64,000 bases of DNA from Botryllus schlosseri (Eukaryota), in NCBI GenBank assembly GCA_051294905.1, contig CM119377.1, positions 11,222,001-11,286,000 of the forward strand, written 5' to 3'. A program made the translations under genes and the position numbers. The notes under the pieces were generated by a model. That model was not told the origin of the DNA, did not search any database, and was given only the letters and a program-made list of their open reading frames with translations. Positions 151 through 54,737 of the stretch are shown in pieces; the first letter of the stretch is position 1; each line of letters begins with the position of its first letter.

Positions 151-3100
151 GCAAATTTGGCGTTTGAAAGAGTCATGAATACATTTATAATAGAAGGCAA
201 TGGAAACCAAGTGATGGAAGCGCATGTAAAGGTTGTGGAAAATTTGCAAAAATATGTAAGTTATGTTCAATTTCCATCAATACTTGCTCATTAGCTGTGC
301 AAGGATGTTTGGTCAAATTGGTGAAATGGCCGAACTAGGTAGGCCTAAATATTCAGGTGTTCTTTTTTATCCAGAGCATTTTTATTCTGAAAAAAAACGA
401 TAAAAATGTGATTTTGCACACAAAACAAAACATTAATGAATATTTATTGCAAATAACTATGACTTCTGCTGTTTTCTTTCATTTAGCAGTTCAGAAATGT
501 GAGGTTTCACTTTGGAAAGTGTCATCATATGGTCGGTTGAAACGAAAAACGCGACAACAATTTCTTAATTTCAAAAGAGCTTATCAATGATGGAGATAGA
601 ATTAGCATTTCAAAATATGAATAGGATGTTGCATACTTCTTGTGGCATATACACCAACTCATAATATACATACACACGATCTGTGCATATGCGCACCATG
701 AGTGCATGATGTGAATATGCCGCTAGACAAGGAAGATGCAGAAATAGCCTTGTAAGGCTTTCTAAGTCTTGCACCACCCCTCCATGCTATCCCAGTAATG
801 CTAAGCGACAAGCGGGGAAGACATGGATACCAGTATTACCAATCAGGTCTTTGGTCTGACCTGGCCGGGAATCGAACCTGCGACCTACCGATCAAGAAAC
901 CGGACGCTCCACCATTACGCTGTCTTGTCGGCGAAAGCACAAGGTTTCGATTTCTTACCCCAACCTACCCTCCGTACGCCGTCGCGGCATACCACCTCAA
1001 CAGTTTGACTACTGATGGTGCCTAATTGTCTGCAACCAATGATGGCTAAGACGAGCTTGTCATCAGGAATCATATGTATGAGTTGAGTATGTGTCTTGAC
1101 CTCCAGGGAACCCTTGAGACTGGCTCCTAAAAAACCCGGGAACCAATGTATTATAACTCAAGAACACTAGAAGATCCACTCATTAAGAGTGATTTGCCGA
1201 CTGTTTGCGCACATATCAATAATTAGATTGTCTTCTATTGCAGAATGAATTTCGGACTCTTGAAATCGCAATTCGAAATTTCAATGTGGTTAAATTCACC
1301 GGTGGAAAGAAAAGGATAAATCTATCCAAACTGAATAAACGCTATGGAGTAAGTATTCATAAAAGTATTCCCAAAAGTATTCCATACTGCTCAGAAAAAA
1401 GGTCGCTTTTAATTCATCCCCTGAAGCTTGAATCAGAATAGGTAATGGTCATGAACCTCATTTTGTCGCTTGTGTCTTATATTCTCTGTATTACTTTTCA
1501 TTCAGTGTGCATGTCTCTTCTTTACTTCGCCTAGGCTTAGGTGGGTGTATGATATTAAAGGCTACTCCAAATTGTTTCGACACCTTCCTATCTTTTCACT
1601 GTATTGCAGTCTTGTGATGTTTTGAAACGATGAAAATATTAATAAAACTGATTGATTGATGAATTGTGGTATTGACAAAGATATGGTGGATAATTTCATA
1701 CCTGCAAAGAATTTTCAAGATAACATATTTCGTGTCGTTCAGACAGGCCATTCATTTTTTCTTTTATTTACCTAGAAGTCGACTTTTAGCAAAATTCGCC
1801 TATTTTGTGCCAACAAAAGATGTTTGTGTATCATCTAAAAATATTATATTGAGCTTTAGTCATCTGTTTGTCTCGATTACACACCCTACACTGCACTGTT
1901 TACTTTCAGAAGAAATAAACTTTTCCCATATGCCTGAGGCAATAGAATTGAATACATTGGCAATTGTCTTTTCAGTATAGCTTCCAAACTTTACAATATG
2001 GATTTTTCACCACTGCTGTGGTCAATCTCTTTTCATGGAAAGAAGTTGACAATATGAATGATCAGACCTTATCTTGATATAGGAAAACACCAACTTATTC
2101 ACTGAGTGTAGTATTAGTAGTGCCCTATTCTTGTGCATTTATCGTAGCGAGGCGTAGGAATCAATCTGCTGCTGTTTTTATATTTTAAAATGCATTCATT
2201 TAGTTTTAATCATTGCCGGAATGCATGCCAACTACTATTCCAATGTCGTCAAAAATTATCAAGTAAATTTCATTGCTTGTCAAGGCACTTGGCCAGCTGC
2301 GTGTGAGAGATCGGGAAGTAGAAGTATTATGTAGGTAGATCATCAGTCACTCCACAACGTCAAATTCTTCCTGCCAACGTTATCATTTGTGATATCAGAG
2401 TTCCTCCAAGAGCGGTTCTATAAGTTATATTGTTCTTATACATGTAAGTCGCCTTGCCCACCTGTCATCACACGGATCACCGAATTCAGCTCCCTAAACG
2501 TTGATATGTGAAACTGCAGGGTCCCCATAATTTCTTGTACCATGCTTTCTTCTCAAAGGTAGACATCAAGTATGCAAAGAAATCCAGACATCTTTCAGAA
2601 GATGACAGGACTTCCTTCAAAATAATTGGGAAGCAAGAAACACTTAAAATACTTTTCAAGGAGCTCAAGTCGAAATATGGTGCTAGGAAGGTGAAGCGCT
2701 TCCTTTATTTGCATATTCTAGAACGCTGGTTCTGAAACTTTTTTAGACAGACTCCCTTGATGATAGTGAAAAATTCCACGCCCCCTAGAGTCATATCGAT
2801 TACACCCTGTCCGACATCGTTAAGTTACTTGTAATTATTTCATGCATCACTGTTATTTTCTTTACGGTTGGACGAATCAATAAATATTTCTTTCTCTCTC
2901 TCTCTCCCTTATCGCCTTATCAAATATTATTTAAAAGAGCAACCAGAATGTTTGCAATACCAACACATAGTTTGATGGCATGGAAAGTTATGACTGTTGA
3001 TAAATCAGTCTGATATCGAATTTGAACAATACACCAGCAAAAATTAGGAACCGGAGATAAATCGCGCGGAGCATGAAACAAATTTCTGTTGAATATTTTT

Positions 3101-31232: not shown

Positions 31233-31239
31233 TTTCAAG

Positions 31240-31700: not shown

Positions 31701-31878
31701 TACTGTTCTACTATATAATCCTATCTCCCTAGTACAACGCCATTTTTTGTTCAGCACTCCCTCATACCGCCCCTGAGCCCAGCACTTCCCCTATCTCCCC
31801 CTGAGCGTTCCCGCTCTCTTCAATATCCAAATCGCCCCTCGGGGCGCTGGAGCCAAGGTTAAGAACCATTTCTCTATA

Positions 31879-32056
31879 TACCGTAATTTTCCATGTATAA
31901 TCCGCAAAATTTTCACGATTTTTTGCCCTAAAATCGGGGGGTGCGTATTATACATGGGAACAACGCCTGGAAAAACTCCCTCGATAAAAAAACTTGAAAT
32001 CACACCTTTCTTCGTGTTTGTGTCCAATCGTGCTCACTTTCAGCCATCGTGCCCAG
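31879..32056. mobile_element. Left end of a pogo/Tigger-like MITE (second copy starts immediately after)
   Basis: taccgtaattttccatgtataatccgc repeated at 31879 and 32057. Confidence 0.8.
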
Positions 32057-33989: not shown

Positions 33990-34417
33990 CTTATAGTTAA
34001 ACGCAGTTTGACCGATGCTGCTTGGCGAGCAGTAGGCCTATCTATGTAGTATACGTATGTATTGTACGTACACTGGACAAAGATTTGAAGTTTTGTACTC
34101 GTCAAATAAAACATTACGATGGTTTAAATCAACAGCTGCGTTAATATATCATAACCGAGCCGTTCTTTGCCGTTTCTCGTAACGGCATAACGGCAGCTTG
34201 CAGTATCAGTATTAAGTGGAAGGTAGAATTTTAAGTTCACTTTATCTTATTCTCATATGACTACTTGAAACGGGCGCCAATCGTAATTTCACTATTCTTC
34301 ACTCGACATTTATACCTGTCGCCATAGTCATCCGCTGATACACCATGTTAGCGTGGGTTGTAGGTACAATCAGGACCAAAACAGCAATTCGTCCCCCACT
34401 CCAAATGTTGGTATTTG

Positions 34418-34941
34418 TAAGGTTGTAACCAAGTTACAATGTTCCGAGTCACAAGTCAATCTCACTTTTATAGTTTTGACTCGAATCAAGTCGATTCATT
34501 TTCAATTCATCCCCGAGTCTAGTCCGAGTCCAAGTCAGCTAGTATAGGGTCCGAGTCATATTTTGTGACTCGAGTACGAGTCCAAAAGTCGTTATGTTCA
34601 CAGATCAGTTTTCTGATCCATCCGGTTCAACCCACTTTTTTCAACTCTGCTCGAGTGACATAGACTGACTCGTATTCATAATATAGTAATTTTCATCCGT
34701 TTTCACAGTTTACGGCCCAATTTCCAAGTATCAGAACTGATAGACGAAATACAAATTATGTGGTAACTTTACTATTCTTCGAAGTTACATGGAACGTCAG
34801 TCTTGGCCGTTCTAGTCTCGAGTCATATGACTTGGTTCCAGTCATGCAAAAATGAATCGAGTACAATTCGAGTCAATACAAAAAATGACTCAAGTCAAGT
34901 CTAGTCACCAAAAAATCGCGACTCGAGTCATTACAACCCTG
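34418..34941. mobile_element. hAT MITE with GAGTC/GACTC subterminal repeats
   Basis: taaggttgtaa / ttacaaccctg; TSD ggtatttg / ggtattgg (1 mismatch). Confidence 0.65.
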
Positions 34942-36612
34942 GGTATTGGGGCCCCATAGGGTGGTCAGTTTTCAAGTTGATGACTGAATTTCGTCAATAA
35001 TATTGGTAATTGCATTATCTTGCTATTCATTCAGATTTACCGGTAGAGCTGGGGGCAAGTAATTCATAATTATAGCATCTGGTATCTTGTTATAATTTCA
35101 TTATTGTATGTTGCTAATTTGTGACCTCCCGCCTTTTATATAATCAAAAGATACTGTAGTCGCCCAGACGTAGCAGACTAAAAGAAAAACTTTCGTAAGA
35201 CGCACACACAAATTGCCATGTCTTCATTCCTCTGTGATTGCTGCGGCTGGCATTTGCATTGTTGGGGCGCAGATTGGAAGGACCGGACTATTCGTCACGC
35301 CCACAGAGCGCAGGTACTGACAATGGACACGTACCCGACGTTTTGGCCAAGGACATTCTTTGGTAGCACAGTTTGTGGAATTGCATGTTGGCCGAAATTG
35401 CATACGTCTTTTTGTGTGTCGTGACGGGGTAATGACCGCCACCGACATGCCTATGCCTGTAAATTATGCATGCTTTTTTTTCTTGAGTGGGAGAGGTATG
35501 CATTTCAAAATCAAGCTACTTAAAGACATCAAATCCCGAAGCTCGAAGAAAATTTTCAAGTTAATTAACTCTCTAGAAAATATGTTGATTTACTCAATAC
35601 TTTTGAGTCCCTTAGAGCTCGCTCCCGGTCCTATTGGGGAGTTTGGGGTGTGGCAGTTACGGACCTGGCAAGAATGCAAATCGTTGGGTGCGACGAATTG
35701 TCCTGCATAGAGGTGGGCAATGGGTGCATTATGAAGTAACAAGCAAATGAAGTATGATTTATAAAGAAAGTTGTTATCTCATTAGACCTTTTCATCGCAA
35801 GCCTTATTTATATTGTCTTCCAATATCTCTTCTGAAATTAGTTCTAAGAAGCAAAACAAATGTAATCGTGAGTAATCGTGATTACTTTTGAAAAGTAATC
35901 GTAATCGTAATCGACTACTTCCTGATTTGGTTGTAATCGTAATCGTAATCGTAATCGCGGGATTCACAAGTAATCGTAATCGCAATCGATTACATTCGAA
36001 AAGTAATCACCCCATGTCTGGTGCATATTATACATGGAAACAACACGCTTGAAAAAAATCTCCCCCGATAAAAAAAACTTGAAATCACACCTCTCTTCAT
36101 GTTTGTTTCCAATCGCTCATCACTTTCAGCCATCGTGCCTAGTAATCCGTATTGTCAGTATAACGCGCTGCCAATTAGCAAAAAGCGTGTTGCCAATTGA
36201 CGAGAGTTGTCTGCACAGCACACAATCTCCTGCTGAGTTGGTTTGCCGTTTGCACGCGAGCGAAATTAGGTCATTCATTGATTGCTTAACCCACGCGCGG
36301 CAATCCTTGCTAATTCATCGACAAGCCATGTGCACAAAATATAATCGCTTGCGTCATCAGTCGCACCTCCAACAGGCGTGGTGTGCACGACATAACCGTT
36401 GGCCTGAGCAATCGCATCTGACCTCGTGCGCAAGATGTCACGTCGCCGGCCTTGAATTCTATCTACTATTGTATAGAGGAAATACCGTTACTTGTATAAT
36501 GATTAGCAATCGCATCTGTAATAGGCCTTGTGCGCAAGACGTCGTGTCGCTGGCCCGAACTATCGCGTCGCCAGTCTCGCAGGCTTTGGCTGCTCTGTAC
36601 TATCGTTTAGAG

Positions 36613-37411
36613 CAGGGGTGTCAAACTCAAATTGCGTGGCGGGCCGGATTCAAGCCTTCAAATCGCTCGCGGGCCGGACCAGTCAACTGATTCGAAAATG
36701 TTACGTCGTGCTCTTGGTTTTCACTTGAATATGTCAAAAGCATTGATAATATAATTGATAATACGCGGAGCATAGGGTCGCAACATCTTTAATCGCAAAC
36801 AATGGAATTGGCAAAAATACCATGATTGTCTTGTTGAATACAGTAGTTTAGAACCACGAAAACAGTGACGACAAGTTGGCATAGTCGATGCTCCCTTTGA
36901 TTTAGCCGTAATCTGGTGTCAGCCCTGCTTATGCGTTGTGAGGAGTACAAGATATTGAAATGCAAACGTGGTCGTTGGAATTCGGGTCATTAGTATTAGA
37001 TTGGTTCGAAAGTGACGCGGCAGTGTGACCTTATGTCAATTGCATATTTGTGCAGCTAATATCTTTTCTATTTAAACGCATATACCGCATTGGCGTTTTC
37101 GCTTCTAAAGATAACTTATTGGACCATATTTGTATGAAATTCTGAACTAAGAGTGCCTTCTTGAAATTGGATGTCAATTTCACCGACTTGTTGCTACTAG
37201 TGGTAACTATAATGGAACCATAGCGCCGTAGTCGGGTGGTTTTAATGGTGCCTAATGTCATGAAAGGATTTCCTGCGCACAATCTCAAAATTTGTTACAA
37301 ATGTGCTGAATATATAGGAAAATTTCTATCTACTCAAAATTGCTTCGTGGGCAGGATGAAATGGTCTGGCGGGCCGGACGCGGCCCGCGAGCCGTATGTT
37401 TGACTCCTCTG
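36613..37411. mobile_element. Charlie/Buster-type hAT MITE
   Basis: caggggtgtcaaac / gtttgactcctctg; TSD gtttagag. Confidence 0.9.
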
Positions 37412-38371
37412 GTTTAGAGACAATGCCGTTGATTGCATAATGATTAGCGATGGTTGTGTCATGATTGTTCGACAGTGACATCGCAAAACAGAACAACATC
37501 GCGTACTATACATGGGTACAGGCAGGCGCGTAGCCAGCCGAAAAATATGGGCGGGGTTTGAAATGAAGAGGGCGGGGTTTCGATTTTTATAGCATCAAGT
37601 CATTAGGGTTAAGTAATGCGTAAATGACGATTATACAATCGCCTCGCGTTGACGAACTTACGCGTATGATAAGCTTGCCAACGTGTCCGGAAGTGCTGTT
37701 AATTAGCGAGTCCCTGATCTCTCGCGAACAATTGAATACGCGAGCTTTCTCTGTCTGTATCGCATAGGTTTCCGGCTATAGGCTAGGTTTTCGGCAATAG
37801 GCGTCCTGTCTGGCGATCCCTTATAGCCGGAAACCTAGCCAATAGCCGAAAACCTATGCGATACAGACAGGTCGCGTACGAAGAAGCGTTCTCTCGTTTT
37901 TCGCGAGCCTGGCCGAAAGCCTACGGGCGCGAATCGAGTTGAAATATTTTTAACTTTATGCGCTATCGGCGCCAACGGCTGGTCGTTCATCGTGTGCTTC
38001 AGTCGTATTTGGCTTGCTGGGCGATGTTATGTTGAGTGTTGTGAATCGCAGGGAGAAGAGATGCTGTGGCAGTGGCGTTGTTGTTTGAAGTAACAGTACT
38101 AATTTACTTCAATTGTAGTGGAGTACAGTGTCAATATTGTTTACCGCACTGTATACCAGTACTTGATGAGAACAATATGAGATGGTCGGCAATCATGGCA
38201 CCAGATATGTTGGTATATTGAATCATTGATAAATATACAGATAGATAGATAAATAGATAGATCGGTAGATATAATATGTTGGGGCTCAGTTCTTGTGATG
38301 GAAGGGGCCCTATTGTTTTACTCATATTTTCTTGTATGCAGTGTCAGGCCTATTTATGCTGTGCATTTGAT

Positions 38372-40785
38372 ATGAATTTTAATGAGGATCTGATCGAAAG
38401 CGTCCGGGACTACCCAGTGCTCTATGACTCTACACATACGAAATTTTTGGATAAAATACGAAAAGATAATATTCGGATAAAGATCAGCGAAAAACTCGCT
38501 AAATACGATACAACAGGTAAGCATGACGAGTTTATGGTTATGAGTGTATGGTATGGTATAGCTCCAGTGGTTCTCAACCGGGGGTCTGCGAAGCAATTTT
38601 AGGGGGTCTGCGTGACGCGAGACCTATAAATTTTAAAAATGATTGATAAACGAATTTCAAATTTTTTAAATTAGGGAAATCACGACGCAGTTTTGCTCCC
38701 CAACTACTAAATCCTCATGACTCACATCATTTCGGCTATTTTGGAAATAATAGTATTTACGGTGACCAATTTCGTCACACCGACATGACCAAAAATTGTC
38801 CAGTAGGGAGTTGTAAATAAATGTATTATGTCACAGTATAATGATTGATGTTTTTTATTAATTTTCACATTGTTTACAGCGACGAACTGCAAAAAACGTT
38901 GGAAACAACTCCGAGACAGGTTCAGCAAATATGTTGGCGAGTTGAAGAAAGCCAAAAGCAGTGGCTCTGCCGCAAGCACTATCAAGGAGTTTACTCATTA
39001 TCAGTCCATGTCTTTTCTGCTTGATCATTTGAAGCATAAACCGTAAGTCCTAACATCATATAAATATCTATAACTACAAGATGGCCCACATTTCTTACTT
39101 GGTATTGCTTATTTTGCGATCAGAACTATTGGAAATGTTGCACCAGATTCTGATGGGAATGGAGATGGACTGGATGTTTCTTCAAATACTGGTAACCTGC
39201 CACAGGATGAATTCATGTGTTTGGTCTGCTTCACGTGTACAACTTTGTTAACAGCAGAATCAAGCCAAGAAGAAGATGTAATGCAAGTCCATGAATCTCA
39301 AGAAGATGTAAGCCAGGTTATGCCTGATGATGGTAGAAATGAGGTAGAGTGTGCGGATCAGCCAACAAGCTCACATACCGAAGTTGTCTCTACAAAGAGG
39401 AAGAAATATGCTGATAAACAAGAATTCCAGGTGAGTTGGATGTGATGAAGGCTTATAGCCAGGGCTTTGGAGCAGCCGAAATTTGCATTGCTCCAGCTCC
39501 GGAGCCGCATTATTACCACTGCTCCGGCTTCAGCTCCGACTCTGAAAACTGTCGAAGGTGTCTGTCTATATCAGGGGTGGGCAACCCGCGGCCTGCGGGC
39601 CCGCAAGCTAATTTCCCATTATATTATCGAAATTGAATTGCTCAGATTGTGAACTTGCAAGGCCAACCAAAAATATGATTAGTCTGGCTGCGACACTTGG
39701 GATGTTGATGACTAGAATATCAGTTCCGGCGCATTAGCGAATTCAGGATCCAGTCCCATTTTTAGTAAATCGTCGTACATTACAATAAACTAAAAGAGTA
39801 GTAAAATTTTTCTTCACGCTTCGCGTGTTTAATTGTCACACGTTTTCTTGCTTTGTAGCCTACCCCCTCCTGAAAATGACAAAACGCCTGATTTAGCCGA
39901 TTGAGTCGAAATATTACGACAGAAAGTCTTTTCGCGTCTGCGCTCGCAGAAAGATCGTTGACGATGAAATGTAGGCACAAAATAATATGATTGTCGTATA
40001 TTAGCGGAAATCTTCGATATCGATATGTCCAGATGCCGAATAGACCTGTCCTTGCAAACTGAGCCCAGTGGGCGGTATACAGTCGACCCGCAATATACCC
40101 AAGTAATAATAATATTAACTTTGAAAGTTTTACGCGCCTGGCGCGGCTAGTTGGCAGCGCACTCGTTCGTCAATTTCATGTGGCCCTTTAGCCGAAAAGG
40201 CTGGCCACCCCTTGTCTATATAGATTAGGTTAGTTATCTATAGTAATCTAGAGTCTGTCAGCCGTCAGTAACATTGGATGCAGCAACAAAGAGGAAAATA
40301 ATCTTGATTTCGCGAAGGCCTGCTCTTGAATTATGTGAACTCAGTAGATATGGTTGTTGCATAATAGCATCTTATGAAACACGTCGGAGCCGGAGCTACC
40401 CCTCAAATAACTAGCTCCAGCTCCGGCTGAATTTTATGTAGAGCCCCGGCTCCAGCTCCGGTAAAAATGGATGGCTCCGGCTCCAGAGCCCTGCTTATAG
40501 TACAAGTAAAGTTATTGAAAGTGGTGATATTCTTATATTTTCCATATGCAGGCCGCAATATCCGACTTCATGAGCCAAAAAGTTAAATCAATGAATGACT
40601 TTACTGCTCATCTTGCAAACAGTCCAAGAAACGAATATGCCCACTTTGGCAGCATGGTTGCAAAGATGCTGGAGAAATTGCCACCAGTCAAAGCTATTTC
40701 TACAATGAGCTGTATTATGCAATTCATGGGTGAGCAGATGTCTTCACTCGAGACACAAGTTATTGATACACAGGATACAGAATGA
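38372..40785 (+). CDS. Harbinger MADF (Myb/SANT-like) DNA-binding protein with BESS-like C-terminus, 261 aa, 5 exons
   Basis: Exons 38372-38516, 38880-39042, 39124-39191, 39255-39430, 40552-40785 splice in frame with GT-AG; LIESVRDYPVLYD...CKKRWKQLRDRF...FTHYQSMSFL; C-terminal EYAHFGSMVAKMLEKLP. Confidence 0.85.
39460..40493. mobile_element. hAT MITE (GCTCCG repeats) in MADF intron 4
   Basis: cagggctttggagc / gctccagagccctg; TSD cttatagc / cttatagt. Confidence 0.8.
39572..40213. mobile_element. Charlie/Buster MITE nested in the previous element
   Basis: caggggtgggcaacc / ggctggccacccctt; TSD gtctatat. Confidence 0.85.
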
Positions 40786-42808
40786 TGTATGTTGTGTGAC
40801 GACTGGATATGTGCAACTGGAACTATAACTACTCGCTTTTGAAAATCGGAAACTAGAACGATTCAATTTTCAAAATCTGCAATTAGAACTAGGACTTACT
40901 CAGTTTTCGAAATCCGTAACTTAGTCACCACGTCAATTAACTAAATTGGTAGATTGCACAAGTCTGGCTGTATGTTTTTGACATTGTTGTTTACCTCTGT
41001 GTTGATACATGCTAAATTCTCTTCACTGCATTTTTTGCTTTTGACATTTTTCATGTCTTTCGCTGTGGTTCTACCTTTCTTATGCGGTAACTTGCCCCTA
41101 GTTCTCGTTCTTGATCTGTGATATTCTGTACTTAGTTGTATGTGTTTCGTTATACCCTGCTGTCAAACTATGTTCGCACAAGCAATTTCCATATCTTCTT
41201 CAGTAAAAACTGTTTCAATATGAATGCATTAACTTGCCCCTAGTACTCGTTCTTGATCTGTGATATACTCTACTTCGTTATACACTGCTTAACACTATGT
41301 TCACACAAGCAATTTTCATATTTTCTTTAATAAAAACTGTTCCAGTAATGTGAATGAAAGAATATTTATGTTTTGGAACAGTGGTTAACAATCAAATGTA
41401 CATCGGATAGTGTCATTTCGTCTAGCAATATATTCAAAAGCAGATTTGGGGTCCCAGAATATCCAAAGCAGATTTGTGGTCCACCAGAGTCGATGAGCTC
41501 ACACGCGATTTACCACTGCTTCTTGCCATGCAACTCTGCCAATATTGCTCATAAAGTAATTGGTAAATTTCTCCCTCACCTCCTTTGCTTCGTTGCTGTA
41601 CATATTGGACCCGTGGTCCCGGTTTGAGAAGTGGTTGTAGGGCCTCCAAAATCACTTGAAGTGGCTGGTGCGGTGCCAAGGTTTGAGAGTGTGCACGAGG
41701 ATCTTAGCTGCAAGAAGTTGTGCAAACAACATGCAGCTTTGGTAATGTCAGTGGCAAGTTTCGGCTCGGCAGTAATGGTGCCCCGGAACACTCTCCACCG
41801 CGCTGCCATCACACCAAATGCGTTTTCAATGACACGCCGTGCACGTGATAATCGGTAATTGAAAATAGATTTGTGCGATGGCAATTGTTTTCCGGGATAG
41901 GGTCTCATCAGATTCCTGCGTAATGGAAATGCCGCATCTCCAACCATGACTAGGGAACACGTACATCTGTCCCAGGTAGGCAGCCATCATCAGGCACATT
42001 TAGTTGACCATTCATGAACTTACTTCCGAAGGTCGAATTCGAAAATACCCCACCATCACTATGTCTCCCCGAATCACCTATGTCTACCAGAGTGAAGCAA
42101 AGCTGTGAGTCACATGCAGCGAGAAGCACAATACTATAATTTCCCTTGTAGTTGTAAAATTCTGATCCCGACTTGGCAGGGGCCTCAATGGTAATATGTT
42201 TTCCATCAATGGCACCAAGGCACATTGGAAAATCCCACTTCTCTTGGAATCCCTTTGATATTCTTTGCCACTCCTCTGGTGATGCTGGTGACTTCAAAAC
42301 CTCAGGCATTAGTATGGTCCATATCGCCTCACATGTCTCCTCAATTATCACTCCAACTGTCGAATGTCCAACACGAAAACTCTTGGAAATTGACTTTCGA
42401 GAATCCCCAGTTGCTAAGTACCTAAAGCAAGATATACTAAGCCTGATGACGGCTTCTTAAAATATATTTCAAACTTTACCTCAATGCAATTGCCAGTCTT
42501 ATGTCAGCTGAAATAGCTTTCCTCCAATTGGTATCCTGCTTCGTTATTTCTGGCTTCAGTTTTTCCAGCAGCTCATAGAAGGTGTTGAAATCCATGCGAA
42601 AATATTCATGAAACATTTCCGGATCGTTGTGCATTTCTCTAACTAAGTTGTACTCCCCCATTTCGTCTGTTTCGAAAAATTGGGCGAACCCATTCCCTGT
42701 AATATATACCATATGCTTGAACTGAACATGTATGGTACACTACTTTGCCGAATCACCAAATCATACCTTTCAGACGAAACTAGCAGAGCCAATGCCGAGC
42801 AGATATTT

Positions 42809-44428
42809 GGCCCTGTGGATATACGCAGTTCACACGCATTTATCGTCTGTCTGGAACGGGTTTTAGCTTACTCTTTGAAAGTAACTCGCAACGAAGGTTG
42901 CCAATTATATTGGTGAACAGCAAATAAATTATATAGTAGCCAATTATTCCACTACATCAATAATGATATCTACTAATCTGAGAACAGCTGCGCAAACGCA
43001 AACTCCATATTATCTGTCCGAAAATTCGCATCTTTGTGACGTACGTTCAAAGTAGACCATGAATTCACTATGACGACATTGAGGTGTTATTTATTTAATT
43101 AATGGACAAGCGTTCAACTTGATGTTGATGTTGATGCTCGATGCTAGTCCAGGTCGTCAGCTCAGTAGCTCACGCGAGCAAAGTGTCTCCTTCAGCCGCT
43201 TCAAACCATCCGGAAAAATGCAAATTCAAAGAATTTAAAAATCACAAAACATGATAACTAGCGTGAACACACCGCAGACACACGGGTTGGAGTCCGTCCG
43301 AGGTCGACTTCAGAGTAGGGATGGTGTGAACGTGAGGTTCACGTTCGCGTTCTGTGTGTGAACCTCGGAAAATTTAAGGTTCGCGTTCACAACAGAACCT
43401 TGGTAGGTTCTGCACTGTGAACCTTTTTCATATATTGCAATTTTCACTTCATTATAACATCTTTAGTTCAGATTTATTGACTTTCAACTGCGGGCCACTC
43501 TATGCATGGAGCTGGCAGCATAAACATTCAACAGTAAACGAGCATGCCCTTGACAATCTAAAAAAATATTGTTACAAAAGTTTGCTCGAAATGTCCAGCT
43601 TTCCGTTTGTACATATTTAGTGTCTCTGTGCTGTGAGCTTGACCCGCAATCACATGACATCAAGAGCGAATACACTGTATTTTGTCAGCGAATGATCCTT
43701 ATTCAACCAATCAATGAGATTGATATCGTCTTCTGATGTAAAAATATAGCAGGCGTACGGGGTAAATCTTGACTACATATGTATACTGTATCATAAAAAC
43801 CAAATCCGTGCGACTGGGGTGTTGGCTATACTGCTGTATATAACTTGTTAATAGGGTAATATCGGTAGCAAGTATAGAAACCCATTTTACACTCTGCGTA
43901 ATATCCATGTGGCAATACTCAGACACCGAATACATTGTCCGATCAGGTCGAAATTTATGGTAAAAGCGACGCAAGATACTGATTTTATGGGATTATTATA
44001 TCATTTGATTGCCTCAGTTGATACATTTGGCGACGTTTAAAACGTCAATATGTATACTTAAGTACTGAGCTATTATGTGGCCCGAGTCGTCGCTCGGCAT
44101 CGTGTACAGTAGATCAATATAGGCAATCACCTAATTGAAATATTGGGTTAAAATTAGCAATATGACGTCACGTGACGTCATGACGTTCACGTTCGTGTTC
44201 ACACAGAACCTTTCAAATAGGTTCACGTTCACACGAACCTGAACCTTTCAGAGGTTCACACCATCCCTACTTCAGAGTTCGATTCCTAAGTGCTGGAGGT
44301 TTACCTGCGAGATACCTGATTACTAAACAAACTTGAACACATCCCCAAAACACTCCAGACTTGATACCTGAGCACCAGAACAGCGTGGGAGAGTGATACC
44401 TGCGTGAACTGCGTATATCCACAGGGCC
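42809..44428. mobile_element. Merlin-like non-autonomous element inserted in transposase exon 1
   Basis: TIR ggccctgtggatatacgcagttcac / gtgaactgcgtatatccacagggcc (GG...CC ends); 8-bp TSD agatattt; related terminus near 58369. Confidence 0.7.
43316..44269. mobile_element. hAT MITE (GTTCAC/GAACCT repeats) nested in the Merlin-like element
   Basis: tagggatggtgtgaac / gttcacaccatcccta; TSD cttcagag. Confidence 0.9.
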
Positions 44429-45704
44429 AGATATTTTGCTGCACGAGCAACACTGCCAATAACGACTCAATGTCACCGTCCTCCAACTCCACGTCCATTT
44501 CCAATGCTCCTTCCGCGTCCATTTCCAGTCAGTCAACAATGTTTTGATCGCAACCATATGTTGTTCGGCCCGCGAAAACGCGGTCCGATACACACCAATG
44601 AAGCGGAAAGCCGAAAGCCTGCCGATAGTCGAAAACCGATGCGCTTCGGCTATAGGTTAGGTTTTCGGCAATAGGCGTCCTGTCTGGCGATCCCCTTACG
44701 CGCATATCAACGCATATTACGTAACCTCGGCGACGATTTGCACAAGTCAAAATGTCCGAGTTGCTATGGAATCTGTTCTATAATGGCACCGATTTCAGGT
44801 GGTTCAATTTCAAACGTTTCTCATCTTTTATAACTCAAGCATTGACACACATCTTCCGATGGTTATGTTCAAGTAGTATATTAGCGAAAATCAATCACGT
44901 ATGTACGGATTGTACGCACTTACATGTTTGCGGTCGATTGCGGACATTCGATGACATTTGTTGAGCGATGTCACTCTTTAATCACAATCGCAAATCCGCA
45001 TACAATCCATCGAGAGATAGGAGGCAAAGCATGCTAGGCCTGAGACGCGATCGTTAGGCTAGCGATGATATCTTTCGTATCAGGCATAGTGCGGATGCGG
45101 TTGTTGCGTAAGCCAACGATGATATGGTGCGCGCCGGGCAAAGCAGATGTGATTGTGCAGGCGATGGCATAGTTCGCACCGGGCCTATTGCAGATGCGGT
45201 TCTTCAAGCCAGTAGAACTAGGCTTGTTAGAGACGTGATAAATCAGGCTAGCAACGATTGCCGAACGCGCGCCAATCGATGACTTAATTTCGCAATCATC
45301 TCAGCGAGATCGATTCTCGTTAGTTTTTGCCGCTTGCGCGTGGCCTGGCTGTGGTAAAGGAATTTAGCAAAAAAATGTTAGCGTAGATTGAAGAATGCCG
45401 TTTGAATACAGTGTTTTACAGTGTTCCGATAACCTGTTGCTATTTCTTTGTTCTTTATTGATATTAAGCCGTCAAATTGTAGATCAAAGTTGTGTTGCCG
45501 TGTATCGCTGAATGCGTGAGATTAAGCATCCAATTGTTGAAGCATAGACCTAATAGAGTTCTAGATTTGATGAGATCGCGGACCACGCGACAATTATGAA
45601 TTACGCGTCGCCAGTGAGGTGAATACTGCAATACATCCGATATTATTAATATTGATTACGCGCGCTCATAAAAGCGACGCGACGAATTGTAGCTACACTG
45701 TGAC

Positions 45705-47668
45705 CAGAGATGCCACTGGGATATTTCGGAAAAACCCAGATGTGGAGGCGAAATAAACCCAGATCCTATATTTCACTCAAAAGGCACGAGATAGCTGTGG
45801 AAGTGGAGCCTGATAGTCGTCGAATACACTCATACAGTCATTGAAGTCTTTGATATTGAATTTACAACAGTTCATAATACACATTTTGCTTGGTTAACAC
45901 TGCGAATCGCACAAAAAACGTTGTTTTCCTCTCGACACATCGCAATGAAACAATTGGGGCGCAGCGCGAATACTTAATAGTGTACCGGTACTAATAATAT
46001 CATCGCGCTGCGAAAGTTCAATGCAATGCCATCCATTCCCTATTTCTAAAGATGATTTCATGTATTTTCAGCGACCTGAACAGATTGAAAGTGGCCTTCG
46101 ATTGATTAATCCTACGACAATCACAATCACAGACCAATGTATAGTGGAAATAAATAACTGCCAAATCATGAAATTCAGGGTTAGGGTTCGAATGTGCTGA
46201 TAAGTGATAACTAGGGCAATTTTTTTTTGACATGTCAAAAAAAGTCAAAATTAGGTCAAAATTGTAGCGTTAGGTCAAAATTTGTCAAAATTGTTTACAA
46301 AGTCAAACATTTTTTGACCTCTGCATTTCGTTTGTATCATAGATTTTGCGCTGTCGGTGAACTTATCATTTGATATTTTACAGCTTGTAGCCTACTTTAT
46401 AGGCCTACCGTTGTAAACGGACCATCGTCTGCTCATTGTGAATCATAAATGGTCAAATGAAACAAATAGTGACATGGTTTTATGGTCAACGTACCGCAAT
46501 ATCCTAGCTGAAGCAAGACTGCTTGGACATTGCATGGTTCTTATATCAAGAAGCGCAAGCTGAAAAATTGTGATATAGACAACATTGTCAGAATGAAGCA
46601 ACACGGTTTGTCACCAGCAGTGTGCACACAACTTGAGTGTTGTCAGCCAACAAATGCTGCTGTTGAACGTTATTTCTCCGTTCTTGACAAGCTACGTAGT
46701 AAGGACAGACACTTTCTACCCGAGAATGTAGGAAAGGATCTTTCGTTGTACTACAACAAATTTTAATTATTTCCACCAGAATACGTAATGTAACTACTGG
46801 AATTCTTCATAGGGCCAGATTTCGTTAAAATACTAGTTTTTCATGTAAAAATCTGTCAGTTTTTGAGCTAAAAACGTTTTTTCAGGCCAATCTACTTTGT
46901 AAGGACAGACAGTTCCAACCAGAAATGAAGATAAGTAGTACAATTTTAACATTGTATGCGAAAACACCTAATTTGCATACGTGGGGTCAAAATTTGGTCA
47001 AATTTCAGTTTTTTTAGGTCAAAAAGGTCAAAATTTAGATTTTTTAGGTCAAAATCTTCCGTTTTTTGGGTCAAAAAAAAATTGCCCTAGTGATAACCAA
47101 TGCCTCTGATTAACTAGCTAGGGGTGTCCAACTAATTCTCTCTCTCTCTCTCTCTCGCTCTGAGTGTCCGTCGGAACTATAAATATACTCAGAGATAACA
47201 ATAGGATTATATTAGTCGGATCATCACCTGGTCTGTTCATGTGCTTGTGCTTGCCATACAGTTACATGATATTTATCGATACATGCCGAATTGTTCACCA
47301 AGTGCATCAAGTGCCGAGTTCGCAACTGGCAATCGTCCTATATGAACATGACTTTCTGCGATCTGGAAGTTACCATTGAATGAAGCGCCATCGCATCAAG
47401 CCGAAGACTCTAATTTTAGTAGTGAAATAGATTATCAGCACTCTGTCGTTACAATAACAGCAAAATCCATTAACAATGGCGAACTGAAGTGCGTGCATTT
47501 TACGATATTGCGACCATACTAATCCGATAATTAATTTTTGAGCGTAAAGCTGACCTGGCGAACTGGATGTTGAAAATAAACCCAGATTTCAAGGATAAAA
47601 ACCCAGAAACCCAGGTGATGCTAAAACAACCCAGATCTGGGTGGAAAAACCCAGGAGTGGCATCTCTG
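45705..47668. mobile_element. hAT element (AACCCAG repeats)
   Basis: cagagatgccact / agtggcatctctg; TSD actgtgac. Confidence 0.9.
46212..47089 (+). mobile_element. hAT deletion derivative (GGTCAAAA repeats) with a CGGBP1-like transposase dimerisation remnant
   Basis: tagggcaatt / aattgcccta; TSD gtgataac; ORF 46530-46766 CQPTNAAVERYFSVLDKLRSKDRHFLPENV. Confidence 0.85.
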
Positions 47669-47843
47669 ACTGTGACTGTGATTACATTATACGACGATAT
47701 AATATCCTTGTCTCCCTTGCACGCACGCGAAAAAAGCCCTCTCTCGTCTACTGTGCACACGAGAGAAGACGCGAGAAAAAGCCATCCTATGTATCGGTCA
47801 TAAATCATTGCGCAAGAGCTTGCTACAAGTTAGCTAGTGCTAC

Positions 47844-48407
47844 CAGTGTTGCCAACCTCGCGGTTTTCCCGCGAATTTGGGCTTGTAGTTTTCGCGATTC
47901 GCGGTTTATTTTCAGGAGTCGCGGGTTGCTTGTTTTTGGGCTTGTTTGATTTTTCATCAAACATGTATGGTGAGCCTGTTATCAAGTTGCATTTGCAGTT
48001 TTTGACACCAATCTTGCAACAATTCAACAAAATAAACAAGCTTTTTCAGTCCGAATTGGAGATCATCTAAAAATACAGGATGATCTGTTACTATTATTTC
48101 GCTCGTTGGTGTCAAGGTTTGTGATACCCTCGTACAAAATGTTTGCTGTACCGACTTCAAACCTACGAAATGCATGCTGGAGCGGTATAATGAAAGCATG
48201 TATCAGGACACTGTGGATGTTGGACAGGAAAATGACATCGTTTCACATGTTAGGCCTATATCTGAGTGAATTGTATTGTAAATACAATGTTTTGAATTCT
48301 AAAAATTGTTGCTTGTTTTTGGGCTTGTGTCGGCTAAAAATTCGCTTGTTTGGGGCTTGTTTTTCAGATTTTTTTGCTTGTTGTTGTAAAATAACCTGGC
48401 AACACTG
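47844..48407. mobile_element. hAT (Tip100-type) MITE
   Basis: cagtgttgcca / tggcaacactg; TSD agtgctac. Confidence 0.88.
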
Positions 48408-48999
48408 AGTGCTACCGACCGACGAAATATTGAAATGCATCGACGGGGGTTTCGCGTAAATGGAAAGGGTTTCGCGTTTCAAAAGTCGGGGGTTTCGACC
48501 CCCGAAACCCCCCCTCTGGCTACGCGCCTGGGTACAGGCTTTTTCCCAGAATTTGCATGCCATTTTAAGGGTGCGTATTATACATGGGGGCGTACTATAC
48601 TTGGAAAATTACGATAATCCATACACAACTCTGATTCAATATTCTATTTACAAGTACTGGCACGCGTGATTTCCACTGAAACAAGAACCGTGATGCCAAG
48701 TGTTTAAATGGTGTCGCAAATGCTGGAAATAGTATTAGGGTACACCAGGCTATGGATATGGTTCTACTGAATTCATTCACATTTATTATGCGTGTATGGA
48801 ATAATCATGCATTTACGGTACTTGTTCCATAGCATAAAACATCATACAACTGAAAATTGGGTAAGCTTTGCCAGAAGGTTGTTAACTGAGTCAGGTTTTG
48901 AGATTCACAACGTGCTTGGTATTTAAAATACCTCTGCCCAAAGGCCATATTTTGATAATTTCTTACTTAAGAGTAGACGGTGTCTGTAATATTTTTCAG

Positions 49000-51900
49000 G
49001 AAGCGAAGTTCAGACGGAGGGATTATGGGAGGCTGACGAATTGGAAAACTTCAGCAATACCAATATTGAGAACTTTGACAACTTTTGCCAAGCAGCTAAA
49101 TCGCTATTTTGGGAGGAAATCAGACTTGAACACAGTCAACTAACGGAAGACGCCATGAATTTGATTATAAAAGCGGTTAAATGCTCAGGGGTTGATGAAT
49201 TTCACTTACGCGATTCTTCAGTTTCTGTCGAACTCCTACAACCATTGTGTGCAATTGATGGCGGAAATTTTTCGGTACGTTTCATTATCGTCAAAATGGA
49301 ATGGAAGAATAACAAGTTTTTTTTTCAAGATTTCTCAGTTTTCGATAACTGGTGAAGATGACATCACCCAGGTCATACCATCAATCTGCAAGATCTTGCA
49401 GGCTCACAACACTACGTCTTTAAATGTATCTGAAAACAATTTAACCGATGATGCAATTTTGACTCTTAAAGAGAATTTCATCAAAACACTGGTAATGTTG
49501 ATGATAATACATGCTTGTTTCAACAACTTCAATTAACATTTGAGCAGGTACCATCACTAACAAAATTGGACATCAGTAACAACGAAGAAATATCCGATTA
49601 TGCAACATTGGGGGGTATCCTGCACTGTAATAAGATGTCGGAATTGTGTGCTCTCAACTGTGGAATCAGTGCTCGATCATTGAGACAACTCTGGTTGAAT
49701 TTACCTGAGAAGGTTGATATAATGATATTGATGGATATAAAAAATTCTTCTGACAACTCCATATTCTAATATAGCTACTTTATCATCGGACAATTTTTTA
49801 ACAAATACGTGAGACAGCATTCAAAAACGATTGATGTGACAATATTGAAACTAGCCACATTCAACCAGAAAACCATGTTAAAAGCTCTGTTGAGAATTGG
49901 CATTCTGCTGTTCATTTGTGTCTTTGTTACACAAGTGCTATCTAGATGGGCCATATGCACTGTAGGACTGACACGACTACCTTTTTAGAATTTATGTATG
50001 TCAATTTTAGCTAAGTACTGACGAAATGACCAGAATTCTAGAATGAAATTTTTGTTGTTGGAGTTCATACTTACGAATATTCAATAAATTCAGCTATCAA
50101 GATTGGACTTGAGTTACAATGCTGAAATGAATTGTAAAAGCTTCTCAAGCATCGGCAATCTGCTGAAGAAAAATTCAGATTTTCTCGGATTGAGTGAATG
50201 CGAAATTACCGGGGACCAAGTTGTAGCCCTTTTTGATTCGCTTGTCAAGGAAGGAATAACAGTGAGTGAAATTGGTTATTGATTTTGACTGTATAGTGTA
50301 TATTGAGATATAACTTCCAAGATTAAATTCTATTGAAGACAGTTTTATCCACCATAACTTGGGAAAACCTGACTCTACTGGACAGATGATCACCATGAAT
50401 CCAGTGACAATTGCCTATTCTCTCATAAATGTCATATGATTATACCTGTAGAGACTCTTTGGGGTACAGAACTTTAATATACATTTTAATAATATATTCT
50501 TTGCAGAATTTATTAAAACCTGAAGCTTTTCGAGCTGACACTCTTCAAGGGCAATTGTCAGCAAATGGAGAATTTCAAAAACATGCATCTAGCTCAGAGG
50601 TCTCAAACTCAAAGGAGCTTGCGGGCCAATTTCCTAGTTTTGATGACGCCGCAGGCCGCAGCATCAATAATGAGGATATTCAATGTATTATTTCCAAGTA
50701 GGCCTTTTTGACGGGACCTTGTAGACAGGCATTCCATAATCATCTTAGAGATGTAATTTACTATTGTAATATTCACGCTTGACACGGAAAGAATTCATAT
50801 TATGAAATATTTGAATAAAATTGTTTTTGTGGCGGGCATAATTTGTTTTTAATTAATGAGTTATAGACATCATAGTAGAGGATGCATCATGCACCCCCTT
50901 GTGATTCCGGTGAGATTTCTCGTCCCTATCCATTTTCAACACAATTTCCGATGGTACCTATATGAAAATGAGAAATCCCATTCACATAAAATCGCGCATA
51001 GAGTCAATACTATTTTCCAGTTGAATAATACGGCCGGCCAAGAAAATATTCCACTGCATGTAGGCCTAATTTCACAATGCATCTCGTGCACCCTGATGCA
51101 TGGTGCTTCGTACTCCGATGGGGTCTATGGACCCTGGTTAAGAACCCCTGGAATAGAAATGTTCAATCGGCAAAGAATTCATTGGTGTAACAGCTGTAAA
51201 GTGTACTAATACCTTTCTCGACACCGATAATAAAATGAATAAAGAGAACAAACAACACCTAACATGTAACAAACTATACGTCACGGGGGTCACAGAATGC
51301 CAATGGTTGCCATACAGACCCGATTAGATAGCTACATATCCTATGCAACGCAAGCAACGGTGTTTTGATATATTACTATTCCCCATGACAGTTTCATAGA
51401 TTGTTTCGTCCGTAGGAATACCAAGTCACCGTTACGAGTCGCAAATCCTTCTCTGATTTTACCGTTTTACCCGACTCAACTCAATTCATTCAGTCACGAA
51501 TCATCAAGGGCCATGTTTTATCATCATGAACTAGAAATGTGACGTAATAGCTGATCTTCTACTGCATAGCAGCTTTTAAAAGTGATGTGATAGTGAAGTT
51601 ATTCAAGATTTCAGTCATCTTTATAGTAGTTTTAGGGTGGGCTTTAAGATCTTATAACTAAAATTGATATATGGCACGTGAATATATTGTTTAATACTTG
51701 AAATTCCAAAATGCCGTCGCGGGCCGCGTGTTTGAGACCTCTGATCTAGCTACATTGCATACAACCAATTATGACGTCATAGAAACAAACAACATGAAAT
51801 ACAGGCAAACCGCGAGCGCAGCTAGTGGCCGATTTTTAGGGTGACTAAAAATTCCTTCTGCTGACACAAGCGCGGTCAGTGGATTTTAATATAAGTCGAT

Positions 51901-54737
51901 TCCAGTGCAGACAGATGGAAATTGGTGCGGCCTCTATCTAATATAGAGAATCTTTCATCGGGATGATTTTTAGCGCAAGTTGCATTCCTTATAATTTCAG
52001 CTCGAACGTTCATTATGTATTTCACAGATAAAAGCTCTTGACTTGAGCTACAATCCCAATCTTCGATACAGTGGCGTGAAGTTCCTTGCTGCTTCCATAC
52101 GGAAATGTCAGATATCCGAACTGAGCTTGGCTGGCTGTAATCTTGATGGCGATTGCATTGTCGCTCTAAAGAATAATCTCAAGGGATATAAGGTATGAAA
52201 TTACACTTGACGTCCTTTGAATCTATCGAAGAATCAATTATGTCCTTCATAACCCTGGTTCGGTTTAGCATGCTAGGGAGTGATGTGACCCGGTTAAGAG
52301 TCCTTACTCTTGTCTGAATGGCAGGGCTGCCAGTGGGTTTGCATGAGATTTTTTTGGAGCTCAGTTGCTGTGTATGTATCGTATATGGGTTTAGTAATTT
52401 GTCTGGTGTCGTGGGTAAGGATTCCATCGATCGCTGTTTTTATTCTGTAACTTTATCTGATATATTTGCAAAATCGCTGGAGTTGCTGTTGTTGAAATCT
52501 TCAACGTAATAACACAATGCTGCTCCTGTTTTGTCCTAATGAACCGTAGAAGGGATGCTACAAAAGCACAATTACGACGAAATGCACTGGTGAATCCGTA
52601 GCAAATCACTATTGATGATTGAGATCATATAATCACAATCAAATTCCTTTATTGCATGTACAATTTTAGATTTAACAAACTGCTGAATGTACAGCAAAGA
52701 TCGAAATTTTGATAAATACATCACCATGATCTGTTTTATAGAACCATTCTATATTTTGCGTAATAGGTAATCTTGAGGGTAGGTAACTTTATAAAATTAG
52801 CTTAAGTCCATTGGATTATTATTTTTGTATTGGGCATACAATATCAGGCGAGAGCGATCGTATCTTAACGGTTTTAAAGTTCATCAAATCAATTTTTGTA
52901 ACTATTCTGTGTGGCAACTTGGCATGGGTTCATCTCGACGTGATCACCATCGATTTTCGGTCTCTTGTAATGGGTAAAGCTGCTCACATGTTGCCCCTCC
53001 CAAATTTTCTACCTGGCTACCATTAGGTCCTTGACATCTACAAGACCTAACCGAGTATATGGTTGTAGTCGAGTCACATGGTACCTTACAAAATTTTTAT
53101 CCGGGCTACCATTATGTCCTGGGCATCTACAGCCTCGTAAATATGCACTTGTCATATTTTATTCCATGCTGACTGATCCTGTTGATCAGTAGTTCTTGAA
53201 CTTCTTAGACGGCAACCCAAATCTGAGTTCTATCCACAGCTCGCTACTATGCTACTATGCTATGCTATACTATGCCTCACAAATATTTTATTAATATTGT
53301 TAGTTTGCCACGTTTTTAGGGACATGTATGACATTAAGAAGGTAAGACGACCAGAAGTATGCAACGCAGTTCTATGTAACAAGCGTGATGCACGTGATTT
53401 CAAAGTGGGGATACATTATTTTCCTTGTGGGTCGCATCTGTACTGCGTGACTTATATTACGAGGACGGGAATATTTGATACCGACAATTTCGATGGATAA
53501 TGGACACATCAATTTCGACGTTGTTGTTCAACCAGCGAAGGGAATCTTTGATACCGCATAATGCCCAGACCTGCCGCATGTTGGTATAAACTTTTTCTCT
53601 TCAAGAGACCGGCGCAGAAAGGGTCGGTCCCGCACCCGCTCGTAGCACATCCCTCGAATAATTTATTTCAACGATCTCCGACAGCATTAAGCCATACCAA
53701 GAATATACCGTTCTTTCACAATTGCGAATACAGTTCTATTCATTTATGTATACAGCAAAAAAATGGGGTGCTGCAGTAATGGTCCAGCACTTCCCCCCTC
53801 TATCCTCACGAGCATTACTTGCAGGCTAAAGCTGTCCGGAGAAGCTTTCAGACATGTCAGAGATACGGACAAACTATCCGAAGACGATCGTACAAAGCAC
53901 GAAAAAATCATAGCTGTTGCATGAAATAATGTCAATATTGCACACATATTAAAAAATTGCTCTGGCTTGGTCTCGACCCATACTTCGAGAACCCTGCTTA
54001 AGAGGATTTTGTTGAAATTACCCTGATCACGGTTACCTTGCGAACCAAAGAGATGTGTATAATATCAGGGTCGACACGACTCTTCTTGGAGTGTCATCCA
54101 ACGGTTTTATCTGGATAACGTGAAGTGAGACATTGAATGCAGACTTCAATATATCATAGTCTGGTTTTACTTCTTCCCTTTCTGCAAAAATTCACAAAAT
54201 GTTTCCAATGACAATTTATTTTACTGGGAACCTGAATTATAAATTCCGAATTCAGGTGGTAGATCAAATCTTAATCATATCGACTTGAATTTTCTAGATT
54301 AAGAAACTGGACTTGAGTGATAACTCGCCGATGGAAGACGAAACACTGGAATACATCGGAGAACTGACTGCTGTTTGTCCAGTTGAAGATTTGGATATGA
54401 GCAACTGTGCTCTTAGTTGTGAACAGTTGCTTATGCTGTCAGAGTCCTTCGGGGAATACAAGGTCTTAGACATATGATTGTAGAATGAGACAGTCCAAAT
54501 GCAGATTCTTCTGTTCAGATTCCCAAGCTCAACATCAGCGATGATCAAGTGACGCTTGATGAGTCCATTGTCGACGCTATCACCGACCTTGCAATCCGAG
54601 TGGAAGATGAGCTCACAATCTGCTATGCAAATATTGAAACTCACTTTACAGCACTCAAACAAGAGCTACTCAAGCCATTGAAGGAAAGAACAAGAGAAGT
54701 ACGTAATGCTTTAAGTAGGCTCAGACTGAACAAGTGA
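49000..54737 (+). CDS. NLR/ribonuclease-inhibitor-type leucine-rich repeat protein (LRR exon array)
   Basis: Exons 49000-49274, 49330-49491, 49548-49712, 50094-50261, 52028-52192, 54298-54462, 54519-54698 (or to stop 54737); LxxLDLSxN motifs (LTKLDISNN, LSRLDLSYN, IKALDLSYNP, IKKLDLSDN); inner exons 162-168 nt, phase 0-0. Confidence 0.85.
50507..50701 (+). CDS. Non-LRR exon, probable alternative terminal exon of the LRR gene
   Basis: ttgcag acceptor in phase 0, reads NLLKPEAF...IQCIISK-stop; AATAAA near 50815. Confidence 0.45.
   Translation, partial: NLLKPEAFRADTLQGQLSANGEFQKHASSSEVSNSKELAGQFPSFDDAAGRSINNEDIQCIISK

Follow-up and report, generated by a model that had tools for sequence, protein, structure and literature searches.

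Does this stretch of 64,000 nucleotides (the window) encode a single chimeric gene, in which a PARP14-type KH/macro region is spliced in frame to an NLR-type LRR array, as the first-pass annotation had proposed, or two neighbouring genes on the same strand? We take two neighbouring genes to be the best explanation, at about even confidence. The upstream gene is PARP14-like, as had been annotated, carrying a PARP14-type macro domain, KH-like repeats and a KH8 domain after the macro region (Table 1). Among expressed sequences its closest relative is P0016, whose complete ORF of 956 aa lies, flanked by UTRs, on an RNA-type contig of 3289 nt (Logan SRR32906214_9005, L001). P0016 has KH and macro domains only, with neither ART nor LRR, so stand-alone members of the family that lack ART exist. 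The window gene is colinear with P0016 over residues 43-898 (~40% identity), and the two share KH_1, KH-like repeats (26-49% identity and colinear by tblastn, with phases that chain) and a single macro domain with matching variant motifs. About 40 N-terminal residues of the window gene lie upstream of the window start; RRM is absent from P0016, whose start is 42 residues earlier than the window's first exon. The central macro exon, 17243-17476, matched Pfam Macro (E 2.8e-7), and its closest solved structures in a PDB search were PARP14 macro domains; those closest to the P0016 macro region were the macro domains of PARP15 and PARP14. In the window gene, FSLDGPYS takes the place of the first Gly-rich macro loop, so that its ADP-ribose binding is putative.

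Table 1. Coding exons of the two halves and features of the interval between them.
Feature	Position	Strand	Details
First exon of PARP14-like gene in window	151..255	+	Acceptor cag/GCA, donor TAT/gtaagt; aligns with P0016 residues 43-76
Classical KH domain and following region, 3 exons	1244-1348, 2559-2690, 5734-5898	+	Colinear with P0016, including its Pfam KH_1 region; boundaries approximate
KH-like repeats, 7 exons	7075-7305, 8467-8625, 9596-9841, 11756-11923, 12590-12847, 13197-13380, 15096-15274	+	tblastn of P0016
Single macro domain, 3 exons	16114-16216, 17243-17476, 20486-20711	+	Pfam Macro; splice sites read
First half of KH8-like domain	27266..27442	+	KH8 profile positions 2-39
Second half of KH8-like domain	30555..30640	+	KH8 profile positions 46-72; strong phase-1 donor GACG/gtaagg
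Fusion intron or intergenic DNA	30641..48999	.	18,359 nt
Short repeat copy	30704-30825
Repeat family	36.0-37.0 kb
MADF ORF	38.3-38.6 kb	+
Harbinger transposase	41.6-42.7 kb	-
First visible LRR-gene exon	49000..49274	+	Phase-1 acceptor; ~38 pre-LRR residues, then first two repeats
Five LRR exons	49330-49491, 49548-49712, 50094-50261, 52028-52192, 54298-54462	+	Phase 0; 54-56 codons, two repeats each; repeat alignment A1
Last LRR-gene exon	54519..54737	+	One more repeat, helical tail, TGA 54735-54737

The KH8 domain was recognized with a profile built from 38 relatives and is rebuilt intact by the 27442/30555 splice (E 1.9e-11; 70/74 profile positions). P0016 differs here from the window gene, as it has no KH8 and ends 58 residues past the macro region. 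An equation of the P0016 tail (..HARILLFATNQANL..) with exon 30555-30640, which would have placed the family's end there, was rejected since 416 of 500 shuffles reached the alignment score; a KH8 in that tail was rejected too, the KH8 profile finding none in P0016. A search for longer relatives based on P0016 returned only P0016 itself. Human PARP14 comprises three RRMs, eight KH domains, three macro domains, WWE and ART (PMC10450202, PMC13224862), and resembles the window gene in its KH-like repeats, its macro domains and a KH8 that follows the macro region at the equivalent place. The window gene, by contrast, has only one macro domain and neither WWE nor ART in the window, and its closest relative P0016 has no RRM. 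Run over the complete set of 2896 six-frame ORFs in the window, a WWE+ART profile made from ~40 relatives reached a best E of 2.7, and tblastn of the window with 50 relatives recovered macro and KH exons only, confirming the earlier observation that no ART/PARP catalytic exon is present. We see in the upstream gene a clear PARP14 derivative, which retains KH8 and has no WWE-ART, and with it no enzyme end, in the window.

In every relative with a C-terminus, WWE-ART comes after KH8, within 10-20 residues. One reading places the WWE-ART exons past position 64000, with the LRR gene nested in a very long intron, which would also fit the strong donor kept at the KH8 boundary, the window ending 33 kb past it. 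We consider this very unlikely, as the intron would exceed 33 kb, five times the largest intron seen in the PARP14-like gene (6.6 kb), and relatives such as P0016 do without ART.

Downstream, the LRR exons encode ~12 repeats of the RI/NLR type, which align as six 55-residue double-repeat units. The A1 repeat profile matches the NLRP1 LRR and ribonuclease inhibitor (RNH1) at ~8e-7, bearing out the description of an NLR-type array; Pfam LRR_6 matches to the exons are weak and below threshold. As in ribonuclease inhibitor and the LRRs of NLRs (NLRP1, NLRP5), LRR_6/RI repeats of ~27-28 residues alternate, two per exon; unlike in NLRs, no NACHT or other N-terminal domain is nearby, the exons are phase 0 and the C-terminus is a helical non-LRR tail. 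An ATTAAA lies past the stop, at 55117. Modelled by AlphaFold2 as a single sequence (mean pLDDT 55), the first LRR exon had an only weakly suggestive strand-helix pattern, a protein-atlas search with this exon returned generic LRR_6 clusters only, and nothing useful came from searching the PDB with the first and the last exon of the LRR gene. Among 5.8 billion proteins there was no match to the ORF that surrounds the first LRR exon, and six ATG-to-stop ORFs from key exons had no exact match, in a collection in which the host species is not represented.

The start of the LRR gene bears directly on the question. The only in-frame ATG of exon 49000-49274, at 49155, lies inside the first repeat, and the first LRR strand is 5' of it. 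The stretch 49002-49151 has a codon score of +10.9, a value that 0.75% of open non-exon windows reach, and the exon looks coding from its acceptor onwards, 5' of its ATG. Because codon usage is exon-like from the first base and the first LRR strand precedes the only ATG, this exon needs an upstream coding exon.

Could that upstream exon be the KH8 exon? Reading the sequence, we found the donor at 30640/30641 (GAC G/gtaagg) and the acceptor at 48999/49000 (tttcag/GA AGC) both to be phase 1. They agree because exon 30555-30640 leaves one base and exon 49000-49274 needs one, and the frame of the former is fixed because it matches the second half of the PARP14 KH8 profile. The spliced sequence reads ..QEVLDKRTD G SEVQTEGLWEADEL.. 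(..VLDKRTD-G-SEVQTEG.. across the join) with no stop, as the first-pass annotation had it. A 23-exon model, with 16 exons over 151-30640 and 7 over 49000-54737, forms a single uninterrupted frame up to TGA 54735-54737, with canonical splice sites at all 23 exons and 919 stop-free codons in the upstream and 439 in the downstream half. The open frame over 151-54737 therefore held, while its given length of 4338 nt was not exactly reproduced; our conservative chain, from which low-scoring exons were left out, has 4077 nt (1358 aa).

The prerequisites of a true fusion, namely a shared strand, a phase-compatible donor and acceptor and an open frame, are thus all present. Such a gene would use the PARP14-like promoter and splice 30640 over an 18.4-kb TE-filled intron to 49000, a rearrangement having brought in the LRR part of another gene, and would yield one protein of ~1400 aa (KH repeats-macro-KH8-LRR) with the LRR array in place of WWE-ART. 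In its favour, few donors of the upstream gene are as strong as the one at 30640, which stands exactly where KH8 ends, the acceptor at 49000 is strong too, and among the phase-compatible coding exons 3' of 30640, exon 49000 ranks first by a wide margin. The long intact frames of both halves, the 33 kb beyond the donor that hold neither WWE nor ART, and a first LRR exon that is coding from its first base with no usable upstream ATG point the same way. The evidence for the fusion nevertheless consists only of structural compatibility at a putative 30640/49000 junction, and phase agreement by itself has a chance of 1 in 3, the same figure as given before. The upstream frame, moreover, already depends on a weak link: donor 20711 leaves two bases and the strong acceptor 27291 is phase 0, such that the frame is kept only by the weak acceptor 27266 or by an unseen exon, and a profile of the pre-KH8 linker gave no further exon in the stretch from 20.7 to 27.3 kb. 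A second weak link is donor 15274.

The relatives weigh against the fusion as well. A check for the Macro+LRR architecture, suggested along with the chimera, went against it: LRRs occur in 0 of 50 macro-domain relatives, neither macro+LRR nor KH8+LRR is found in any relative, and the KH8-to-LRR join has no precedent among those with a C-terminus. As far as these sequences go, the KH-macro-KH8-LRR architecture is unseen among the 50 closest macro-domain relatives, and the closest expressed one, P0016, ends with no LRR. A fusion intron would have three times the length of the gene's next largest. Short unseen terminal or first exons, or spliced-leader trans-splicing, are fully possible instead, and the joining of neighbours that have unseen end exons is a common modelling artefact. 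Overall, we regard a true fusion as somewhat unlikely.

The interval between the halves had been described as almost all transposon, holding no NACHT exon and no start exon for the LRR gene. The first of these points is only partly borne out: besides a Harbinger transposase and a MADF ORF the interval contains several repeat families, to one of which its longest plus-strand ORF (227 aa) belongs, but only 16% of it is repeated within the window. Pfam NACHT was indeed absent from the 24 plus-strand ORFs of at least 70 aa scanned between 30.7 and 49 kb, and no WWE, ART or LRR exon was found in the interval. A start exon for the LRR gene was likewise not identified, yet there are 16 candidates running from an ATG to a phase-1 donor, and the interval also holds a TE gene on the plus strand that has a strong donor. 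The density of sense-strand AATAAA does not tell the interval from true introns, and neither an Rfam nor a tRNA scan gave a hit in the window. Heavy invasion of the region by transposons would suit a further reading, in which one half or both would be a young relic that is not expressed, the PARP14-like gene being truncated at its 3' end and the LRR/NLR gene at its 5' end, with stops yet to accumulate. Both halves do miss the ends usual for their families, and donor 20711 does not fit the frame of the strong acceptor 27291. We hold this to be quite unlikely, given the 919 and 439 stop-free codons and the canonical splice sites of all 23 exons; in addition, the divergent macro motifs are common to the window gene and the expressed P0016, which suggests constraint.

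Two neighbouring genes on the same strand are the most likely arrangement. That P0016 stands alone with neither ART nor LRR, and that no macro-domain relative carries LRRs or a precedent for the KH8-LRR join, argue for separate genes, as does a gap of about three times the largest upstream intron that contains both a TE gene with a strong donor and candidate first exons. If the 30640 donor is unused, the frame runs only 17 more codons to a stop at 30691-30693, with the first AATAAA at 31563. RI-type LRR-only proteins are a common architecture, and the phase match may be chance. Gene 1 would then extend from upstream of the window start to ~30.7 kb and end either by this read-through or in a short unseen tail exon. 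Its make-up of a classical KH, KH-like repeats, one PARP14/15-type macro domain and KH8, with no enzyme domain, would be that of a putative non-catalytic reader or adaptor in ADP-ribose signalling. Gene 2, at 49.0-54.7 kb, would encode a cytosolic LRR protein of the ribonuclease-inhibitor/NLR type, starting from a short unseen first coding exon with a phase-1 end or, should the genome be that of a tunicate, from a spliced leader at the 49000 acceptor; in Ciona, SL trans-splicing affects about half of the genes (PMC4691747). What the window itself demonstrates is the identity of the domains, the exon structure and the lack of WWE, ART and NACHT, while the transcript starts and ends and all functions at the locus are inferred. 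Against two genes stand the strong donor exactly at the KH8 boundary, the need of exon 49000-49274, coding from its first base, for an upstream coding exon, and its rank as best phase-compatible coding exon 3' of 30640. Neither a terminal exon of gene 1 nor a first exon of gene 2 was identified, and a single deletion fusing two introns would account for both missing ends.

If the 30640/49000 junction were used, the locus would represent a natural domain swap between two innate-immunity toolkits, PARP14-type ADP-ribose reading and LRR sensing. The product would be a putative ADP-ribose-reader/KH scaffold coupled to a ligand-sensing solenoid with no NACHT, and would suggest that an invertebrate chordate can link ligand recognition with ADP-ribosylation signalling independently of NACHT. 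In human PARP14, KH8-WWE-ART contacts KH2-KH3 of DTX3L (PMC13224862). Even as a separate gene, the upstream gene and the expressed P0016 point to a lineage of non-catalytic KH-macro proteins. Like adaptors of the PARP9/DTX3L type, the upstream gene combines KH-like and macro domains with no working ART. PARP9 retains an inactive ART fold, whereas the upstream gene has no ART fold at all in the window.

The 64-kb window is gapless eukaryotic DNA of ~39% G+C in which exons are short and transposon fragments abundant. The upstream, PARP14-like gene closes with exon 30555-30640, whose reading frame is fixed by homology to KH8 (the KH domain that precedes WWE-ART in PARP14) and which ends ...GAC G/gtaagg, leaving one base over. 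The acceptor at 49000 (...tttttcag, then GA AGC) opens the downstream LRR gene with an exon that requires one base, and the joined junction translates as ..QEVLDKRTD-G-SEVQTEGLWEADEL.. We used splice sites, phases and homology to assemble a conservative chain of exons, and the upstream and downstream parts combined form a single 4077-nt frame with its sole stop at the end. The phase-1 compatibility of the join proposed in the first-pass annotation is therefore borne out, as is an open plus-strand frame from 151 to 54737; its length of at least 4338 nt is not, and a few additional exons that we did not accept into the conservative chain probably account for the excess.

Features of the PARP14-like and LRR genes and of the surrounding repeats
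Feature	Coordinates	Strand	Details
Upstream exon chain	151 to 30640	+	16 exons, 2758 nt
Downstream exon chain	49000 to 54737	+	7 exons, 1319 nt
Short repeat	30704-30825 and 25450-25567		79% identical copies; first ~60 nt past donor 30640, second in preceding large intron
Repeat family with longest plus-strand ORF of interval (227 aa)	36007-36687	+	without Pfam match
MADF-domain ORF	38276-38599	+	very strong donor, phase 1
DDE_Tnp_4 (Harbinger/PIF) transposase fragments	41579-42739	-	split across three ORFs
44-nt inverted repeats, 86% match, flanking 2.3 kb	56019-58349		two plus-strand ORFs (123 and 94 aa), without Pfam match
Near-perfect hairpin, 197 nt, 93% match, 94-nt loop	63175-63662		

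Two weak links lie upstream of the junction. Donor 15274 is weak, and donor 20711 leaves two bases whereas the strong acceptor 27291 is in phase 0, so that its use would run out of frame to an early stop; the frame past 20711 is kept only via the weak acceptor 27266 or an unseen exon. The two acceptors stand 25 nt apart (27266-27291) ahead of the first KH8 exon, and could reflect a switch between alternative splice forms, an exon that went unseen or incipient decay. That one or both halves are young relics we consider improbable.

A KH8 profile (Pfam name KH_PARP14_8) built from the KH domain ahead of WWE in 38 relatives matched the spliced exons 27291-27442 and 30555-30640 (E 1.9e-11; 70/74 positions), and of the window's 2896 ORFs these two exon ORFs scored highest, with one domain half each. 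This match gives good support to the predicted PARP14-like identity, to splicing of 27442 to 30555 and to the frame at donor 30640. KH8 stops two residues ahead of that donor. Relatives possessing a C-terminus begin WWE-ART no more than 10-20 residues after KH8, yet no frame of the window matched a WWE+ART profile (~40 relatives; best E 2.7), consistent with the earlier statement that the intervening 18 kb holds no ART/PARP catalytic exon. Together, these results indicate by homology that the upstream gene is a PARP14 derivative without the writer module, at least in the 33 kb downstream; a nested arrangement, in which WWE-ART lies past the window end, seems highly improbable.

Using the central macro exon as query against 1.8 billion representative proteins, we obtained 50 listed matches, PARP14-like proteins for the most part. 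The best colinear relative was P0016, a 956-aa protein with ~40% identity across 151 to 20711 that carries KH_1 and one macro domain only. Its 3289-nt contig, from a sequencing-run assembly, is almost certainly an mRNA because its ORF is complete and has both a 5' and a 3' UTR, and it supports the existence of a non-catalytic PARP14-like lineage. The ORF occupies 225-3095 of contig L001 (Logan SRR32906214_9005), an expressed, ART-less sequence from a different sample; a second fragment, P0011, lies on contig L002 from a sister run. The macro exon of the window matched Pfam Macro (E 2.8e-7), its nearest solved structures being PARP14 macro domains, and those nearest to the macro region of P0016 were PARP15 and PARP14 macro domains. 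The motifs NTTNK.FS.DGP and GGWKSE, common to the upstream gene and P0016, suggest constraint, and ADP-ribose binding is putative given a divergent first Gly-rich loop. The upstream protein would serve as a non-catalytic KH/macro scaffold. Since the human PARP14 KH8-WWE-ART fragment contacts DTX3L (PMC13224862), the retained KH8 may by analogy preserve a protein-protein contact.

Of the seven exons in the LRR gene, five are phase-0 units 54-56 codons long that carry two repeats each; the gene closes with a helical tail and a TGA at 54735. Singly, its exons gave only sub-threshold LRR_6 matches against Pfam; a profile of the double-repeat units matched the NLRP1 LRR domain and ribonuclease inhibitor (~8e-7), which places the predicted array in the RI/NLR repeat class. 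Its product would be a cytosolic binding module. No LRR exons were found outside the array in the rest of the window, and 24 plus-strand ORFs of at least 70 aa scanned between 30.7 and 49 kb held no NACHT or other domain, as had been claimed for NACHT. Proteins called on public assemblies yielded no entry from this species, either when searched with the first LRR exon or when six ORFs were looked up exactly.

The open frame of exon 49000 starts three codons ahead of the acceptor, and an ATG occurs in frame only once, at 49155. The 50 codons preceding this ATG scored +10.9 bits on a codon table from whose training the exon was excluded, a score attained by 0.06% of non-exon windows and by 0.75% of the open ones among them. 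The strand of the first repeat (EEIRLEHSQLT) also lies upstream of the ATG, which falls within the next helix in a low-confidence predicted fold of the exon (pLDDT 55). The codon score and repeat strand indicate that exon 49000 was coding from its first base, and probably still is; it needs an upstream coding exon ending in phase 1. The alternative of a spliced leader at 49000 with translation from the internal Met is weakened by this coding signal.

The 18.4-kb interval contains Harbinger transposase fragments (-), an MADF ORF (+), probably parts of a single two-gene Harbinger-type element with a broken transposase, a short repeat directly after donor 30640, and several repeat families also present in introns of the upstream gene. 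Only 16% of it is repeated elsewhere within the window, so that describing it as transposon almost throughout is plausible at most. The 227-aa-ORF family has further copies within the PARP14-like gene, in two of its introns (3957-4483 and 21404-21836; one inverted). The interval was also said to lack a start exon for the LRR gene; 16 candidates running from an ATG to a phase-1 donor are present, none convincing. If donor 30640 is left unspliced, a stop follows after 17 codons (30691-30693), with the first AATAAA at 31563. A poly-C run followed by a (CA)n microsatellite occupies 31196-31232.

Is the main product then a fusion transcript across 30640/49000? The phases are compatible, the strong donor sits exactly at a domain boundary, and the strong acceptor opens a coding exon without its own start. 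Alternative exons of comparable quality are absent: donor 30640 has 235 phase-compatible acceptors downstream, and of these exon 49000 has by far the highest coding score. Both halves are intact, and one rearrangement would account for both missing ends. However, phases match by chance one time in three, the fusion would require an intron three times the length of the gene's largest, and no relative combines macro or KH8 with LRR (50 macro-domain relatives for LRR). The expressed ART-less P0016 stands alone, LRR-only proteins are commonplace, and first and last exons, if short, routinely go undetected. Neighbouring genes merged under such conditions are a familiar annotation artefact, and genuine fusions are rare. 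We therefore regard the fusion as possible though unlikely, and give about even chances to two separate genes.

Just downstream of the LRR gene, the element bounded by 44-nt inverted repeats looks like a DNA transposon. Inverted relatives of the hairpin at 63.2-63.7 kb occupy 13426-13824 and 14160-14561 within one PARP14-like gene intron, and together these look like a foldback/MITE-like family.
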